Shown here: in pieces, positions 11,755-58,982 of the stretch
How positions within the stretch are numbered: position 1 is the stretch's first letter
How the letters are laid out: every line of letters starts with the position of its first letter
Origin: Salpingoeca rosetta
Taxonomy: Eukaryota > Protista > Choanoflagellata
Direction of reading: 5' to 3'
Assembly: GCA_033442325.1 (NCBI GenBank)
Contig: JAWQFM010000007.1
Coordinates: forward strand, 234,414-298,413
DNA: 64,000 nucleotides
Translations under genes and position numbers: made by a program
Notes under the pieces: generated by a model
Database searches by the model: none
What the model was told of the DNA's origin: nothing
What the model saw: only the letters and a program-made list of their open reading frames with translations

Positions 11755-12923
11755 CCCGCATGTGTGCTTGTTATATTCCATCCCCCACCCACCACCACCA
11801 CGCGCTGTTACAGTGTGACCACGCCTGCTCCTTCATGGGTGTGCCTGCTCTCCTTCCCCTCTGGCTGTCCTTCCCAACAGCCGATGTGGCTTTCGTGAAC
11901 GATTTCATATAATTTTCTACAATGCCATCCACACGGCAAACTCCCACAACAACAAAGAAGCAGCACGCACCACGACGACAATCACCACGCACGGTGTGCA
12001 CGCACTGCGTGCTGTCGTGGTGCACGTTACCACTTCCCCTTTGCCCCTTGCTTCAACACAGTTGGAAGCTGCGTGTTCCAGAAACGTACCATCTGCAACA
12101 AGTGTCCTCGCTGGCTAAACCTGGTCAGCAGCTCGCGTCATCACTGCAAGCTCCATCAGCACTGCCACAATTCGTGCCATGTGTTGGTCGCAGTGCCAAG
12201 ACAGAACCCGCCCGTGCAGGCCAACAGCCCATGCAACTTCCCATACGAGCTGCTCACAACCCCGTCTGCATTCACATACCCAAGCCGAGCACGTACCTTG
12301 TCCACTATGCAACAACATCCAAATGCAAATCAGGGACGAGGTGAGCACCGAGGCACACCAACGAGCCGCCCTCCCGTGTTCGTTCACCCTCAACGCGTCT
12401 CGCGCGACGGCCCAGAATGGATGAGACGCCAGCACGTCGTGGGCAAGTCCGTCAGAGTTTTCCATCCACCATCCACGGCCTCAACCATCCCCCCGCCACC
12501 TCAGCACATGAGCACTAACCACTCTGTGATCATGGGTTCAGCACGATGCAACGCACAGCAGCTTTGCACCACACCTAAACAGGGAGACGAACCACCCCAT
12601 CCATCCATATTTGCACGTCCCCACAGCCGTGCACCGATCTGCAACAGCGAGCAGATGCGACAACAAGCTCGGGTATCTCCACATTTTCCTGATTGTACTC
12701 CCAACGTCAACGATCCAAACAAGACGCGCTCACGCAGAAGACGACGACAAGTTGACGACAGATAGCGCACTTGAAAGACGACCCCAAACAGGCAGCTCCA
12801 CACCAACGATTGGAAAGTCAGCAACGGGCAACGCTCGTGAACTGAGTCATCACGTCAGCCACAACTCCTGCCTCAACATCATCGAACACCTTACTTGAAC
12901 GCGCACACAGCCACAGGCAAGCC

Positions 12924-15900
12924 ATGAAGAAGCGTAACAAGAACGCAGCCAAACCACCAGCAGCGACTATGACAACAACACCACCAGCACCGTCACTTCG
13001 CTTCACGCCCACGATGGCGCGTGTTCTCGGCATCATCGCGTCTTGCCTGCTGCTGGCAGCAGGCTCAACTGCACAGTCCCTTCGCGATTTCGAGATTGCA
13101 CACGCCGGATCCACAGACAGCCCTGCTCCTTCATGTCAGACCCGCTACGCCCCACGCGTGTACGCTGCAGACCCGCCGTGTGGGTTCCAAGACAGGGATG
13201 GCACCGTCAGGCTCAGCACAGGCATTGATCCGGCTGTGCAAGGCGATGCGAGGGCCACGTGCGCATTCTGGCTTCCGTTTACCGTCGCCCACAACACCAC
13301 CACCCCTGGCCCCAACGGAACGACAATCATCACCACAACGTCGTCCTTGAAGTGGTCCTGCTCGTGGCACGGGTGCGAGGCGTCTGCGACGGTGGTTGAC
13401 GGGGGCAACGCGATTGTGTGCGCGGTGCCGGGCAACATGCCGACGAACATCACGGCGACGGGGCCGGACGGCAGCCAGGCCGTGCGGGTGACGGTGCGGG
13501 TGTGGCACGCGCAATACGCGGGCGGCAGCGGGGACAGCGCGTGCCAGTCGCACGGCGGAGAGCCACCGGCGCTGTGGGACCAGCACGACTACGTGGTGGC
13601 GCACCGCAGCTGCGGGTGCCCGCCCGGCGTCGGCTACGTCGAGTGCGAGGAGCCCGACATGTGCCGCACGCACCGCTGCCTGGCGCACCCGCGGGCGGTG
13701 TGCGAGGTGAGCCACTGCGGGGTGTGCGCGGTGCGGTTCTACGCGGAGAAGCGCAGCTCGTACGAGGGCGTGGCGCCGCTGGACTGCCTGCCGCGCGACA
13801 AGTGCACGGGCGAGTGCCGCAAGGAGTTTGAGGCGTGCTCGCAGTACACCGGGTGCAGGGAGGCGCTGTACCGGCTGGTGGACGAGCGGGCGTCGTCCGG
13901 CACGTGCAACGGCACATGCCACGAGCGGCTGGCGGTGCCGACGGAGCCCGGCCGCACGCTGTTTGACCGCGTGTGGTCCTGCTACCGCACGTGCGAGGAG
14001 CGGGAGACGGTGCACACGGTGTGCGCGCTGCCGCCGCGGGCCGGGCAGTGCAAGGGGCGCATGACGCGGTGGTACTTTGACAGGATCACGGGCAAGTGCC
14101 GGCAGTTTGCGTATGGCGGGTGCGGCGGCAACGGCAACAACTTTGAGACGAGGGAGGCGTGCGAGCAGCGGTGCGAGCTCGGGGCGTGCTGCACGCGGCG
14201 CACGGTGCTGGACGACGTCGGGTACGACGCCAACGGGTACGACCAGTTTGGGTACGACCGGCGCGGGTATGCGCGGGACGGGTTCTCGCGGCGGCCGTGG
14301 ACATACGCGGAGTTTGTGCGAAACACGTTTGACCTGTTTGGGCTGGACGAGCGCGGGTACGATCCGCGCGGGCTGGACGGGTCTGGGTTCTCCGTGGACG
14401 GCATGTCGCAGAACATGAGCCGCGACGGCCTGCAGTTTGAGTACCTGGAGGAGCAGATGTACGACGCGTGGGGCGTGGACAGGGCCAACATGAGCAGGCA
14501 GGGCTTTGACCTGCGCGGGTACGGCTACAACGGGCTGTACCGGCAGGCAGAGTACACGTGCCAGCAGACGACGCGGGAGCAGTGCCAGGCGCTGGAGGAG
14601 GGCGATCCCAACACAGACGTGGTGTCGTTTGTGCGCGGGGTGGCGTGCGGGGACAGGCAGTGCGGCAACCCGCAGTGGCAGGAGCCGCGGCAGTGCATCT
14701 ACCAGGGCCGGCGGTACAACTACGGCGAGACGTTCCGCTACGCCTGCCAGTGGTGCGTGTGCGGGACAGACGGGGCGGTGACGTGCCAGTGCACGCCGCG
14801 GCGGCGCCGTGAGATAAGGGACCTGACGCTTGACGAGGTGCAGACGTACATTGACGCCATCTGGCGCCTGTACAACAGTGGCAACAGGTGGAACGAGTTT
14901 GTCAACATGCATCTGGGCGCGGCAACCACAGCGCATGGCAACCCGACCTTTCTCCCCTGGCACCGAGAATTCACAAACCAGTTTGAGCTTGCGCTGCGGG
15001 AGGTGACTGGCAACTGCGACTTCACGCTGCCCTACTGGGACTGGACAATCGACAGCAGCTCGCCCGAGACCTCGCCTGTGTGGAATCTCATTGGCGGCAA
15101 TGGCCAGGGTGGCAACAACTGCGTGCAAGACGGCCCCTTCGCCGGCTTTCGTCCGTGCCTCCGTCGAAACTGGGATTCAAGCGTGTCGATTCCTTCGATC
15201 GCAGATGTGACCAACGTGCTGAGAATCCGGGATTACACCACCATGTCGGCACGACTCGAAGCCATTCACGGCAACGCCCACAACTTCATCGGCAGTCAAA
15301 TGTCCACCATGTCTGCACCCTACGACCCTGTCTTCTTCTTGCATCACGCATACGTCGACAAGCAGTGGTACGACTGGCAAGTCGTGCTCGGAAACGGCAA
15401 CGACTTTACACCTGAGCGACTCCACGACACGATGGACCCGTTTCCCAAGACGCCGGCAGACGTGCTTGACAGCGAGGGCCAGCTGTGCGTGGTGTACGAG
15501 CCGCCTGGCCGCACGCCGCCCTGCAACGAGGCACTCTTTGGCGGTTCCTATGAGACAAAGGGATACTACGCACCCGGTGCCCGGCCGCAGTACGACCGCG
15601 ACGGCTACGACAGGGATGGATATGACAGGCGTGGACTTGACAAGCTCGGGCGGAACCGGGATGGGGTGCGTGTTGGCGGGGTCACTGCGACGGGGTTCAA
15701 CACGGCCGGAGTGGACAGCCGCGGGTGCAGCATCATGCATCCGATGCCGCTGTACATGCGCGACGTGTTCCAGGCGCAGCGGGAGCTGTACCGGCGCATC
15801 CAGGCCAACGCATATGTGCAGCCCGCGCGCACGTGCAGCCCACTGCAGCCGCTGCCGGCGTGGTGGAAGGCGTCCATGTGGATGTCGCGCGGCGGGCTGT

Positions 15901-17688
15901 ACGGGGCGATCATGGATGCGTACGAGGCGTACCTCGAGGAGGCGCTGGTGAGGCAGCCGGACGAGTGGCAGCGGGACAGGACGCAGTCGCAGCCGTCGAT
16001 CCTGGAGGACCTGTGCTTTGCGGCGGACGACCTGACGCTGCGGCAGGACGACAGCTGGCGGCCGGGCGACGACTACCAGTGCCCGCCCGGCTTGCCGCGG
16101 CAGAACTGCGAGTGGAATCCCTGTGCGAATGCGACGTGTCCCGGGTCGCCGGACGCGACGTGCTGGGTGAACCCCTGCGGGCGGTGCCGGCCCGAGTTCT
16201 ACCGGGAGGACGGGTCGCGTGCGCGCTGCTACTCGACGTGCCCGGTGGAGGAGGGCACGTGCACGTTTGACCCGTGCGCGTATGCGACGTGCGAGGCCAA
16301 CCCGGAGGCCGTGTGCGAGACGAGCCCCTGCGGCGGGTGCGAGGTGGAGTGGAGCGACCCTGAGACGGGCGAGCCGGTGACGTGCGATGTTGAGCCGGAC
16401 TCGTGCGCTGCGCAGGGCCAGACGTATGTGTGCGGGGAGGACGGGCAGACGTACGACAACGTGTGCTATGCGCGGGAGGCTGGGGTGAAGATTGCGTACG
16501 GGGGGCTGTGCGTTGCGTGCGAGCGGCTGTGCCCGCCGGAGGGGATGGCGGCCAAGGCGTGCGGCGAGGACTGGCAGACGTATGCGTCTGTGTGCCACGC
16601 GCGGTGTGCCGGGGTGAAGGTTGTTGTACACGGGGGCGTGCCGGCCGCTGCCTGTGACGTGTGAGCAGGTGAACTTCTTCAAGGCGTCTGACGCGGGGCG
16701 GCAGCAGCTGTGCAACGAGCACACGTCGTGCCTGACGACGGTGGCGCGGAGCGCGGACAACCGGTGTTTCTGGAACGAGGACACGCGGCGGTGCAGCTGC
16801 CAGCCGTCGGACGTGGTGTGCACGGCTGGTGCGCACGAGTGTGCGCGGTGCTGCAACGACGACCTGCGGCGGTGCCTTCGCTGGGGGCAGGACAGCGTGG
16901 ACACGTGCTGGCGGGAGGCGTACGTTGCGTGCACGGTGCAGTGTGCGGAGGAGTACGATGCAGCCAAGCTGCCGGTAGCCGCGGCCTCTGTTGGCAGTGT
17001 TGATGATGGCGATGGCGGCGATGGCGGCGATGGAGGGATTAACATCTTCCTTGGAGACGATGACATGGTGCACAGCGGTAACGACACGAACAGCACTGCG
17101 CCTGGCCCCACTGGCCCGCTGGACACGGTTGTGTTCCGTGTTGGGCTGCGCGGACGCCCGAGCACGACGATGGACGCGGCGCAGTTTGCGGAGGCGACAA
17201 GCCTTGCTGTTGGGCGGGCGTCGTTTGTGCCGTCGGCGATGCGTGTAGTTGGGGCGAGCGCGATGGCTGCGGAGCGGCTGGGCAACACCACGGCCGGGGT
17301 TGAGCTTGAGGTGAACGCGGAGAGCAGCGACGGGTACGCGGTGCAGGCTGCGCTTGAGGCCGCGGTGGTGGAGGGCCGGCTGGCAAAGGAGGTGGCCATC
17401 TACACCGGCAGCGCCACCACAGACGACGTCATGCTGGTTGGAGCTGTGGAGGTGATTGAGCCACCAACCACGCCTGCACCGACTGACGATCCAAAGGTCA
17501 ACCCACGTGAGTCCGATGCAGCCATCCCGATCCCAGCCATTGCTGGTGTTGTTGCGGCCCTGATTGTAATTGTCGGCTGCATTCTCGCTGTCGCAATTGT
17601 TCGCAAGCGCTCATGTGTCCGCCCGAAAGCGTCAGAGTCGACGTCGCCTGCTGGGCCGCGTGGCGTCACCACCGTTGGCGACAACTGA
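12924..17688 (+). CDS. Intronless multidomain cell-surface tyrosinase, copy A: signal peptide, IPT/TIG-like, Cys-rich, Kunitz, GYD repeats, VWC-like, tyrosinase, GYD repeats, 2 Cys-rich repeats, 2 Kazal, stalk, TM. +1 frameshift near 16624
   Basis: ORFs 12924..16664 and 16621..17688. Kunitz CALPPRAGQCKG..WYFD..C..FAYGGCGGNGNNFET..C; CuA H..AHGNPTFLPWHR; CuB HGNAH..DPVFFLHH; Kazal VCGEDGQTYDNVC; TM IAGVVAALIVIVGCILAVAIV-RKR. Confidence 0.9.
13352..17442. repeat. Left arm of a ~4.1 kb inverted repeat (partner 28777..32865)
   Basis: Reverse complement nearly identical to the copy B coding sequence; many identical shadow ORFs appear on opposite strands in the ORF track. Confidence 0.95.
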
Positions 17689-17700
17689 TCTGAACCATCG

Positions 17701-17769
<69 letters not shown>

Positions 17770-18334
17770 TGTGTGTTCTGATGCTTGCGATTGTGATCCT
17801 TGTACATGCGGTCATTCTTTTTGCTCTTTGCTGTGCATAGTCTCAGTTTCCCGCGCTGCTTACACAACTGTGTTCTGCCTACACGATCGCCCTTGCCCTA
17901 CTGATAGCGCCTGTGTATGTGGGTTTTGTTCTTCCTACCATCGTGGGGTCTCTCTTGTCACCCGTGCGTGCATTGCGGCTGTTTTGTTTGGGAAGCCCCT
18001 CTCAAGATTGCTTCATGATGCGTGCTGCTGGTGCTCTGTTCATCATAGAATGTGCAAACTGTACAATTGCGGCAGATCCTATCAACAGTCATCAAATACG
18101 CGTGGTCAGAGGCAAGGCTAAATGTGTGTATGTGTGTTGGGGGGAGGGGAACATATGGAAGAAAGCATCATCAAGCTAATGAATCTCACAAAAACGACAG
18201 GGACACAAGGCTGGCAAAGCGGAAGCTGTGAGCGGCACAACAAGGCAGAGCAGCAAGAAATGCTCTGCCCACATGATATTAAGGCAAAGTGACATTGGGA
18301 ATGGCACTACAGAAAGGGAATGCGCGCTACACAC

Positions 18335-27234
<8,900 letters not shown>

Positions 27235-28529: not shown

Positions 28530-33818
<5,289 letters not shown>

Positions 33819-58796: not shown

Positions 58797-58807
58797 AGTA
58801 GCGTTGA

Positions 58808-58982
<175 letters not shown>

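Follow-up and report, generated by a model that had tools for sequence, protein, structure and literature searches.

Salpingoeca rosetta PTSG_11341 encodes a predicted membrane-anchored type-3 copper oxidase with protease-inhibitor domains and pentad repeats

In this work we analysed a 64,000-nt stretch of Salpingoeca rosetta contig JAWQFM010000007.1 (hereafter the window, to which all coordinates refer) and characterised the gene PTSG_11341 (annotated as hypothetical protein; 100% match to the public protein P0001). PTSG_11341 encodes one continuous single-exon chain of ~1,587 aa (1,557 aa if counted from the second ATG), the ectodomain of which, judged from its sequence, carries a di-copper oxidase that appears catalytically competent and is of the compact, bacterial-like kind of tyrosinase. 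The enzyme kind is already known; we found no earlier description of this membrane-anchored multidomain setting for a type-3 copper oxidase. We favour the reading, at a probability of about one half, that PTSG_11341 is an oxidase, surface-bound or shed, which generates quinones in the extracellular material of attached cells and carries a trypsin-directed Kunitz domain.

Copper site and domain architecture of PTSG_11341

All six copper His are kept in PTSG_11341 (P0001), and likewise in the inverted paralog PTSG_11343 (P0003), in P0004 and P0007, and in the environmental relative P0013. S. rosetta possesses five genes of this type (PTSG_11341 and four paralogs), and the copper site is intact in four of them; in P0006 (S. 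rosetta 'mantle protein 9') two copper His have been lost, the second His of the CuA site being changed to Tyr and the second His of the CuB site to Arg. In sequence comparison with solved structures, Streptomyces tyrosinase was the best single-domain match (E 7e-32), followed by Bacillus megaterium tyrosinase, and human TYRP1 gave E 1.8e-7. The core modelled by AlphaFold2 (AF2) displays the four-helix-bundle tyrosinase fold at a predicted local distance difference test score (pLDDT) of 84-94. VIA-align superposed it on B. megaterium tyrosinase with Z 27.3 and a root-mean-square deviation (rmsd) of 1.6-1.7 Å over 232-233 residues (36% identity), and on Streptomyces tyrosinase with Z ~26 (40% identity). 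Overall, the core shares fold, size and the six His with bacterial TyrBm (Bacillus/Priestia megaterium) and Streptomyces MelC2 (Z 26-27, rmsd 1.6-2.0 Å, 36-40% identity), as well as the lack of a Cys-His thioether and of a C-terminal lid domain. No Cys stands two residues before the second CuA His of PTSG_11341, and therefore there is no thioether bridge; neither a zymogen lid nor a conserved activation site was found in the domain alignment. The bacterial enzymes differ in being free-standing and ~280 aa in size, MelC2 with a caddie protein, whereas the PTSG_11341 core lies inside a membrane-anchored chain of ~1,587 aa.

Animal membrane-bound tyrosinase and TYRP1 resemble PTSG_11341 in layout (type I, signal peptide, Cys-rich module before the tyrosinase, one transmembrane (TM) helix and short tail), and TYRP1 could be aligned to the PTSG_11341 model with Z 24 over model residues 199-603 (first and last aligned), starting in the CQ/VWC-like part. 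However, its sequence affinity is weak (E ~1e-7 vs. ~1e-31 for Streptomyces tyrosinase), and the gamma subclass is not the closest in sequence to PTSG_11341; the animal membrane-bound enzymes are melanosomal and are devoid of Kunitz and Kazal domains and of pentad repeats.

The modules run in the order signal peptide, N-terminal module, CGxC module 1, Kunitz, repeats, CQ/VWC-like, tyrosinase and repeats, followed by helical linker, CGxC modules 2 and 3, two Kazal domains, Cys-rich domain, juxtamembrane alpha/beta domain, TM helix and a short tail. The features are listed below.

12924..17688, + strand: PTSG_11341 coding region, single exon, ~1,587 codons with one extra reference T at 16624/16625 dropped (see below); alternative ATG at 13014
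13014..13079, + strand: predicted signal peptide (MARVLG...STAQS), hydrophobic 19-mer with Kyte-Doolittle 1.71 (second strongest segment)
13131..13610, + strand: N-terminal Cys-containing module, no Pfam match; three repeats in paralog P0004
13611..13742, + strand: six-Cys CGxC module 1, which aligns to modules 2 and 3 as well as to the C-terminal modules of fish and spiders
14022..14174, + strand: Kunitz/BPTI domain, Pfam PF00014, residues 366-418, E 9e-21, 74.2 bits vs. a cut-off of 21; AF2 pLDDT 75-87
14217..14546, + strand: G[YF][DN]xx pentad repeat region 1, period 5; AF2 pLDDT <55, no regular secondary structure
14553..14792, + strand: alpha/beta CQ domain and VWC-like/FnI-like Cys module (the latter at 14694-14792); AF2 strands and helix, pLDDT 77-85
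14808..15539, + strand: type-3 copper tyrosinase domain, Pfam PF00264, residues 654-819, E 5.8e-36, 125.3 bits vs. 22.6
14910, 14934 and 14961, + strand: CuA His codons, residues 663, 671 and 680 (catalytic-domain alignment)
15267, 15279 and 15345, + strand: CuB His codons, residues 782, 786 and 808 (HH pair 15342-15347, residues 807/808)
15561..15728, + strand: G[YF][DN]xx pentad repeat region 2, low AF2 confidence
15729..16028, + strand: helical linker with a conserved C-P-x3-LP-x2-W motif (columns of alignment A2); AF2 helices, model residues 584-651, pLDDT 84-89
16080..16385, + strand: six-Cys CGxC modules 2 and 3, same internal alignment as module 1
16383..16641, + strand: two Kazal-type domains, Pfam Kazal_2 in two stretches; the second spans the reference frameshift
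16660..16944, + strand (+1 frame of the reference): C-terminal Cys-rich domain, conserved Cys columns in alignment A3
17119..17460, + strand: juxtamembrane alpha/beta domain, SEA-like, beta-alpha-beta-beta-alpha-alpha-beta (AF2 on a paralog as proxy, low confidence)
17524..17601, + strand: TM helix, 19-mer with Kyte-Doolittle 3.14 (strongest segment), AF2 helix
17602-17685, + strand: cytoplasmic tail, 28 aa, basic

A signal peptide together with a single C-terminal TM helix, the latter already noticed in the initial annotation, supports a predicted type I membrane topology and fits the surface protein that had been proposed. All of the elements named there were recovered, the VWC-like domain below threshold. 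Both quoted repeat strings were found on the two sides of the tyrosinase, at residues 433-454 and 890-909. The Kunitz domain has six Cys and a basic P1, Lys, after the second Cys, as read from GQCKG at 14043-14057. Three ~45-aa stretches have a common six-Cys pattern ending in CGxC, and the same module closes the fish and spider cassettes described below. The two Kazal domains (PF07648/PF00050) score 24.5 bits vs. 22.8 on the first reference open reading frame (ORF), and 41.4 bits with two domains on the continuous paralog. For the VWC-like domain, a Cys module is present at 14694-14792, but every VWC-type Pfam score is below threshold, and VWC-like is the fitting name for it (no match to PF00093; FnI_RECK 21 bits with a cut-off of 30; VWC2L_2nd 12.2 bits with a cut-off of 27). 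The RRRR cluster before the catalytic domain does exist (14799-14810); it largely corresponds to the conserved R[RK]EIRD motif that opens the tyrosinase domain, and only two of its four Arg are conserved. A conserved furin site was rejected since RRRR is not conserved in the alignment.

Pfam gave no match at E up to 5 for the N-terminal module, the helical Cys region, the linker or the C-terminal region, and an ESM Atlas search with the N-terminal module gave no usable match. The topology of the juxtamembrane domain fits SEA in AF2, but at pLDDT ~55-70 from a 5-sequence alignment (mean of 56.7 for the C-terminal half); it has no Pfam match at E up to 5 and no clear G/SVVV autoproteolysis motif. 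The Kunitz, repeats, CQ/VWC-like, tyrosinase, repeats, helical linker and CGxC parts form a cassette of ~700 aa. AF2 (residues 360-1110, 28-sequence alignment; mean pLDDT 69.6, predicted template modelling score 0.72) packs this cassette as one unit, in which the Kunitz, CQ, VWC-like, tyrosinase and linker parts are confident. Papilin, agrin, HAI-1/SPINT1 and RECK also carry Kunitz and/or Kazal modules in a large extracellular chain, and papilins are among the Kunitz-only matches; these proteins have no oxidase, and their homology to PTSG_11341 is limited to the inhibitor modules. The architecture is not unique, being found in five S. rosetta genes and in animal homologues.

Gene model and inverted paralog

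The single membrane-anchored chain of the initial annotation is interrupted in the reference, where ORF 1 (12924-16664, + strand, 1,246 codons) ends in TGA at 16662-16664 and ORF 2 (16621-17688) lies in the +1 frame. It is restored when one T at 16624/16625 is dropped, as the reads indicate. We aligned two raw stranded RNA runs (X21 and X22) and two DNA contig sets to 12800-17800. The features that bear on the gene model and on the inverted copies are as follows.

16624..16625, + strand: extra T in the reference, a frameshift leading to the stop at 16662-16664 (alignment of PTSG_11341, copy A, with PTSG_11343, copy B)
16590..16668, + strand: annotated 79-nt intron of the public model, deduced from P0001 vs. 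the window and unsupported by reads
14866..15665, + strand: divergent catalytic core of the inverted copies, 67-94% identity (sliding identity)

One letter is absent at 16624/16625 in 11 of 12 RNA reads in X21 and in 7 of 10 in X22. The PTSG_11341 reference has GTTG-TT-GTAC at this site vs. GTTG-C-GTAC in PTSG_11343, which reads through. The T>C counts indicate that some five reads in each run have the deletion but not the C of the paralog, giving GTTG-T-GTAC with an in-frame Val codon; exactly this single-T form is found in a DNA contig of 2013 (X14). Downstream of the site the frame is open for 355 codons and is 96-100% identical to the paralog per 100-column window, and the second Kazal domain is uninterrupted in every other family member (alignment A3). 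The S. rosetta genome assembly combines Sanger data with 454 sequencing, a technique liable to indel errors in single-base runs. A real frameshift, which would leave a truncated secreted protein ending after Kazal 2 with no membrane anchor, or a decaying copy, is suggested by the reference stop and by the up to 1/12 and 3/10 reads not scored with the deletion. It is very improbable given that the RNA reads lacking one T mostly do not have the copy-B form and hence come from the PTSG_11341 copy, and given the single-T DNA contig, the long open frame nearly identical to the paralog and the 454 data in the assembly.

The public model bridges the site with a 79-nt intron and thereby loses the latter half of Kazal 2, of which 26 residues are missing. 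No RNA joint was seen in the two RNA runs anywhere in 12800-17800, the annotated intron included, and the middle of the intron is covered at the depth of its flanks. A real 79-nt intron, or alternative splicing between secreted and anchored forms, was therefore rejected. We concluded that the extra T is a reference error, because RNA reads and a DNA contig are without it and the assembly used 454 data, that the intron is an annotation patch, and that the true product is one continuous single-exon chain.

PTSG_11341 is expressed in both RNA runs (2026), including its copy-specific core. The first mates of the RNA reads lie on the - strand, which in usual stranded libraries means + strand RNA, and sense reads dominate. 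Both inverted copies are transcribed, copy-B letters at 17057-17061 being present in 9 of 22 and 8 of 17 reads. At 15496, 15582 and 15613 some RNA reads run into unlike sequence that spells AAPGQSPPCN and EGYYVNTT; these reads are from paralog P0004 or P0007 mapping across conserved edges and are not splice variants. Opposite PTSG_11341, long antisense ORFs rich in Arg, Pro and Ala occur on the - strand at 13131-15128 (665 codons) and 15177-17399 (740 codons). They look like a by-product of high GC content at third codon positions (GC3), and reads of opposite orientation reach at most ~3x in any bin, far below the sense reads.

The paralog PTSG_11343 (~28771-32865, - strand) lies head to head with PTSG_11341 at a distance of ~11 kb, with a tyrosine-kinase-like gene between them. 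Its first repeat region contains a 220-N assembly gap (31562-31781), because of which the public PTSG_11343 protein model skips a segment. Identity between the two copies is 99.7-100% over 13352-14865 and, per 100-column window, 96-100% over 15666-17365. Between these flanks, the divergent cores differ with a synonymous distance (dS) of 0.50 and a nonsynonymous distance (dN) of 0.128 (dN/dS 0.26), and they are each other's closest relatives (75% vs. 62-64%). The near-identical flanks (13352-14865 and 15666-17447) have GC 0.67-0.70 and GC3 0.80-0.94, and the copy-specific parts GC 0.60 and GC3 0.57-0.75. Such a pattern is what one expects if GC-biased gene conversion is ongoing but stops at, or is counter-selected in, two catalytic cores that are old and differ in function. 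The substitution values point to purifying selection on the catalytic core of both copies. Positive selection on the active site was rejected on the dN/dS of 0.26 and the retention of all copper ligands, and import of the divergent core from a third paralog was rejected because the two cores are closest to each other.

P0004 is also intronless (5,040 nt for 1,679 aa; locus L002, 3001-8040), and P0006 (locus L003) has introns. The intronless coding regions of PTSG_11341 (4.8 kb) and P0004 (5.0 kb) stand among neighbours whose spans far exceed what their products need, and these neighbours therefore probably have introns. Long (CA)n/(GT)n microsatellites occur just past the PTSG_11341 stop codon (17700-17776) and elsewhere in the window, e.g., at 2212-2288, 22433-22516 and 58802-58978.

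Pentad repeats, animal cassettes and thecate expression

The G[YF][DN]xx repeats form two blocks, at residues 432-541 and 880-935. Nine strict G[YFW][DN] motifs were observed vs. 1.4 ± 1.2 in 2000 shuffles (maximum of 7), with a dominant spacing of 5. In PTSG_11341 the aromatic position of the strict motifs is Tyr in seven and Phe in two; the corresponding counts are 5 Tyr, 7 Phe and 1 Trp in Thunnus, 27 Tyr and 16 Phe in Ptychodera, and 10 Tyr and 1 Phe in P0006. The repeats are kept in animal homologues without the full copper site and likewise in P0006, the dead paralog. When the Ptychodera cassette was used as query, many bacterial proteins (Firmicutes and Chloroflexi metagenome bins) were returned with 44-114 of the same pentads, fused to UvrD-type helicases, to (double) zinc ribbons or to nothing recognisable (P0126, P0129, P0135, P0145, P0183, P0226 and similar proteins). 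Residues 420-630 gave no match to Pfam PF25296 ('Decapeptide repeat region') at E up to 5; the bacterial pentad proteins reach 40.5 bits against it, below the cut-off of 45, and the similarity is at the level of the motif only. Identity with the classical pentapeptide repeat (A[DN]LXX) was rejected since its residues follow another order. The conserved Gly and Asp/Asn indicate a structural repeat, and the pentads are probably a general structural repeat, whether the bacterial arrays are homologous or convergent.

These observations bear on the self-crosslinking protein of the initial annotation, in which the tyrosinase would hydroxylate Tyr of its own GYD repeats, in cis or on a neighbour, and the resulting DOPA and quinones would crosslink theca, stalk or glue. 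The repeats do stand on both sides of the enzyme and are rich in Tyr in S. rosetta, the repeat regions look flexible in the model and could reach an active site, and paralogs are enriched in thecate cells in the published tables (see below). Streptomyces tyrosinase acts on a Tyr of its caddie protein. However, the repeats are equally conserved in copper-dead animal homologues and in P0006, their Tyr is often replaced by Phe or Trp, identical pentads occur in 40-114 copies in bacterial helicase and zinc-ribbon proteins, and the conserved Gly and Asp/Asn suggest a structural role. Since the repeats persist in copper-dead homologues, often with Phe, and in bacteria, a main role as self-substrate is disfavoured and we consider it unlikely. 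A functional analogy exists with the adhesive and sclerotising tyrosinases (mussel byssus, tubeworm cement, fluke eggshell), in which an extracellular type-3 copper enzyme works on Tyr-rich matrix proteins. Those are separate secreted enzymes whose substrates are other proteins, and we know of no established enzyme-substrate fusion among them. Part of this analogy is drawn from a spiralian tyrosinase study (PMC11667028).

From Kunitz to CGxC module, PTSG_11341 is collinear with animal proteins, at 30-35% identity over 96-99% of residues 330-900. The hosts include the hemichordate Ptychodera (two cassettes), spiders (Caerostris), the bivalves Mactra, Dreissena and Tegillarca, the bryozoan Watersipora, the shark Chiloscyllium, the hagfish Myxine and many teleosts. 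Alignment A2 of 28 sequences has 25 invariant columns. In the aligned animal cassettes (Ptychodera, Caerostris, Metynnis and Thunnus), three to five of the six copper His are replaced. The hagfish protein P0127 carries the cassette ahead of seven VWC domains and a VWD domain, a kielin/chordin-like make-up. The kielin/chordin-like cassette proteins share the collinear Kunitz-to-CGxC region with PTSG_11341 and differ from it in that some carry EGF domains, VWC repeats and VWD (VWC repeats and VWD being absent from PTSG_11341 by Pfam), and in that the sequences read show neither a Kazal pair nor a TM anchor like those of S. rosetta. A word search with the cassette alone recovered six proteins, none from a named choanoflagellate, which is no evidence of absence. 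We found no description of this family in the literature except a passing mention of long kielin/chordin-like outliers in PMC11667028, no paper on PTSG_11341 or PTSG_11343 and no relevant one on choanoflagellate tyrosinases; a paper on exon shuffling is silent on these domains.

The retention of a full-length cassette in animals lacking the His ligands, and the loss of two His in the S. rosetta paralog P0006, might be taken to mean that the protein is mainly a non-catalytic binding or adhesion scaffold, as in animal kielin/chordin-like proteins, with the copper site as a dispensable ancestral remnant. This is quite unlikely for PTSG_11341, as the six His are all retained in P0013, the environmental relative, and in four of the five S. 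rosetta genes, and as the dN/dS of 0.26 at dS 0.5 across the core indicates selection on the catalytic domain.

Expression by cell type was taken from the supplement of Fairclough et al. (2013; PMC4054682), in which the thecate list was identified by its Attach/Colony column headers, the captions being shifted by one file. In the tables used, two paralogs are upregulated in attached (thecate) cells, with the following values in fragments per kilobase of transcript per million mapped reads.

PTSG_12389: thecate cells 22.7 / 189.5 / 151.6, swimmers 35.3, colonies 0.5-6.3; log2 fold 5.5, P 7.8e-24, attached vs. colony
PTSG_06045: thecate cells 6.6 / 38.2 / 29.0, swimmers 8.5, colonies 0.8-3.6; log2 fold 3.75, P 1.8e-13, attached vs. 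colony

According to these tables, thecate cells express PTSG_12389 and PTSG_06045 at 13 to 45 times the colony level, and their thecate values are high with mixed bacteria, lower with Algoriphagus alone and always far above those of colonies. The same thecate list includes a DUOX-like haem peroxidase (PTSG_06098), a DUOX maturation factor (PTSG_12394), a prolyl-4-hydroxylase, collagens and VWA proteins (PMC4054682). As seen in this list, its top is an oxidative matrix-building programme, and the link to theca or attachment that had been suggested for PTSG_11341 is plausible by way of the two thecate-upregulated paralogs.

A phenoloxidase-like role in defence or feeding is another reading, in which quinones or melanin-like products would act against bacteria and the Kunitz and Kazal domains would neutralise microbial or prey proteases. 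It draws on an apparently intact oxidase site beside protease-inhibitor modules, on the fact that S. rosetta feeds on bacteria, and on several paralogs with diverged cores under purifying selection, which could reflect different substrates. We regard it as unlikely: the domain has no zymogen lid and no conserved activation site, the RRRR cluster is not conserved, and in the 2013 tables paralog expression tracks the thecate cell type, not bacterial diet.

The reading that we favour, a surface or shed quinone-making oxidase of attached cells, would work as follows. The enzyme would be loaded with copper in the secretory pathway and displayed at the cell surface or shed into the matrix. There it would turn phenolic groups, those of protein Tyr/DOPA or of small phenols, into quinones, which in turn would harden or glue the extracellular material of thecate cells attached to a substrate. 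By its P1 Lys, the Kunitz domain would block nearby trypsin-like proteases. The G[YF][DN]xx repeats may be flexible elements with a structural or binding role that came with the cassette, and not mainly a substrate of the enzyme itself, and the animal cassette may have become the copper-less module of kielin/chordin-like proteins.

Several points weigh against this reading. The thecate profile in the published tables comes from the paralogs PTSG_12389 and PTSG_06045 and not from PTSG_11341 itself, and the RNA depth over PTSG_11341 is only 2-19x, from a quarter of each run. The animal homologues manage without copper, and the cassette must therefore have some non-catalytic function, possibly the main one in PTSG_11341 as well. 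The first CuB His is followed by Gly in PTSG_11341 and by Asn in the bacterial tyrosinases; in some studies Asn at this position favours monophenolase activity, but it is not strictly required. Because of this Gly, the enzyme may oxidise diphenols only. By the Cys2+2 rule the Kazal P1 residues would be Ala and Pro, which look non-canonical and are atypical for inhibitors, and the Cys spacing of the first Kazal domain is atypical. Finally, the repeat blocks have no confident AF2 fold, so that the role proposed for them is a guess.

Implications for S. rosetta and for the animal family

The public PTSG_11341 model needs correction: it should lose its intron and one T and gain a complete second Kazal domain. 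In the survey by Aguilera et al. (2013; PMC3658974), neither Monosiga nor Capsaspora yielded a type-3 copper protein, S. rosetta was not included, and membrane-bound (gamma) tyrosinases were inferred to be metazoan-only. This picture needs revision, because S. rosetta has five genes of the PTSG_11341 type, four of them with intact copper sites.

The copper-less collinear cassette of animal kielin/chordin-like proteins makes a clear case of an enzyme turned pseudoenzyme at the origin of animals. We tentatively extend this to a scenario that is possible but doubtful as a whole: the ~700-aa cassette may already have been an active surface oxidase hardening the attachment matrix in the common ancestor of choanoflagellates and animals, its copper site may have decayed in animals to leave a pseudo-enzyme module of kielin/chordin-like BMP regulators, and the pentads may be an undescribed structural repeat that bacteria have as well. 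S. rosetta is genetically tractable and has paralogs that are thecate-enriched in the 2013 tables, and a role of these oxidases in the theca or in attachment is therefore open to direct test.

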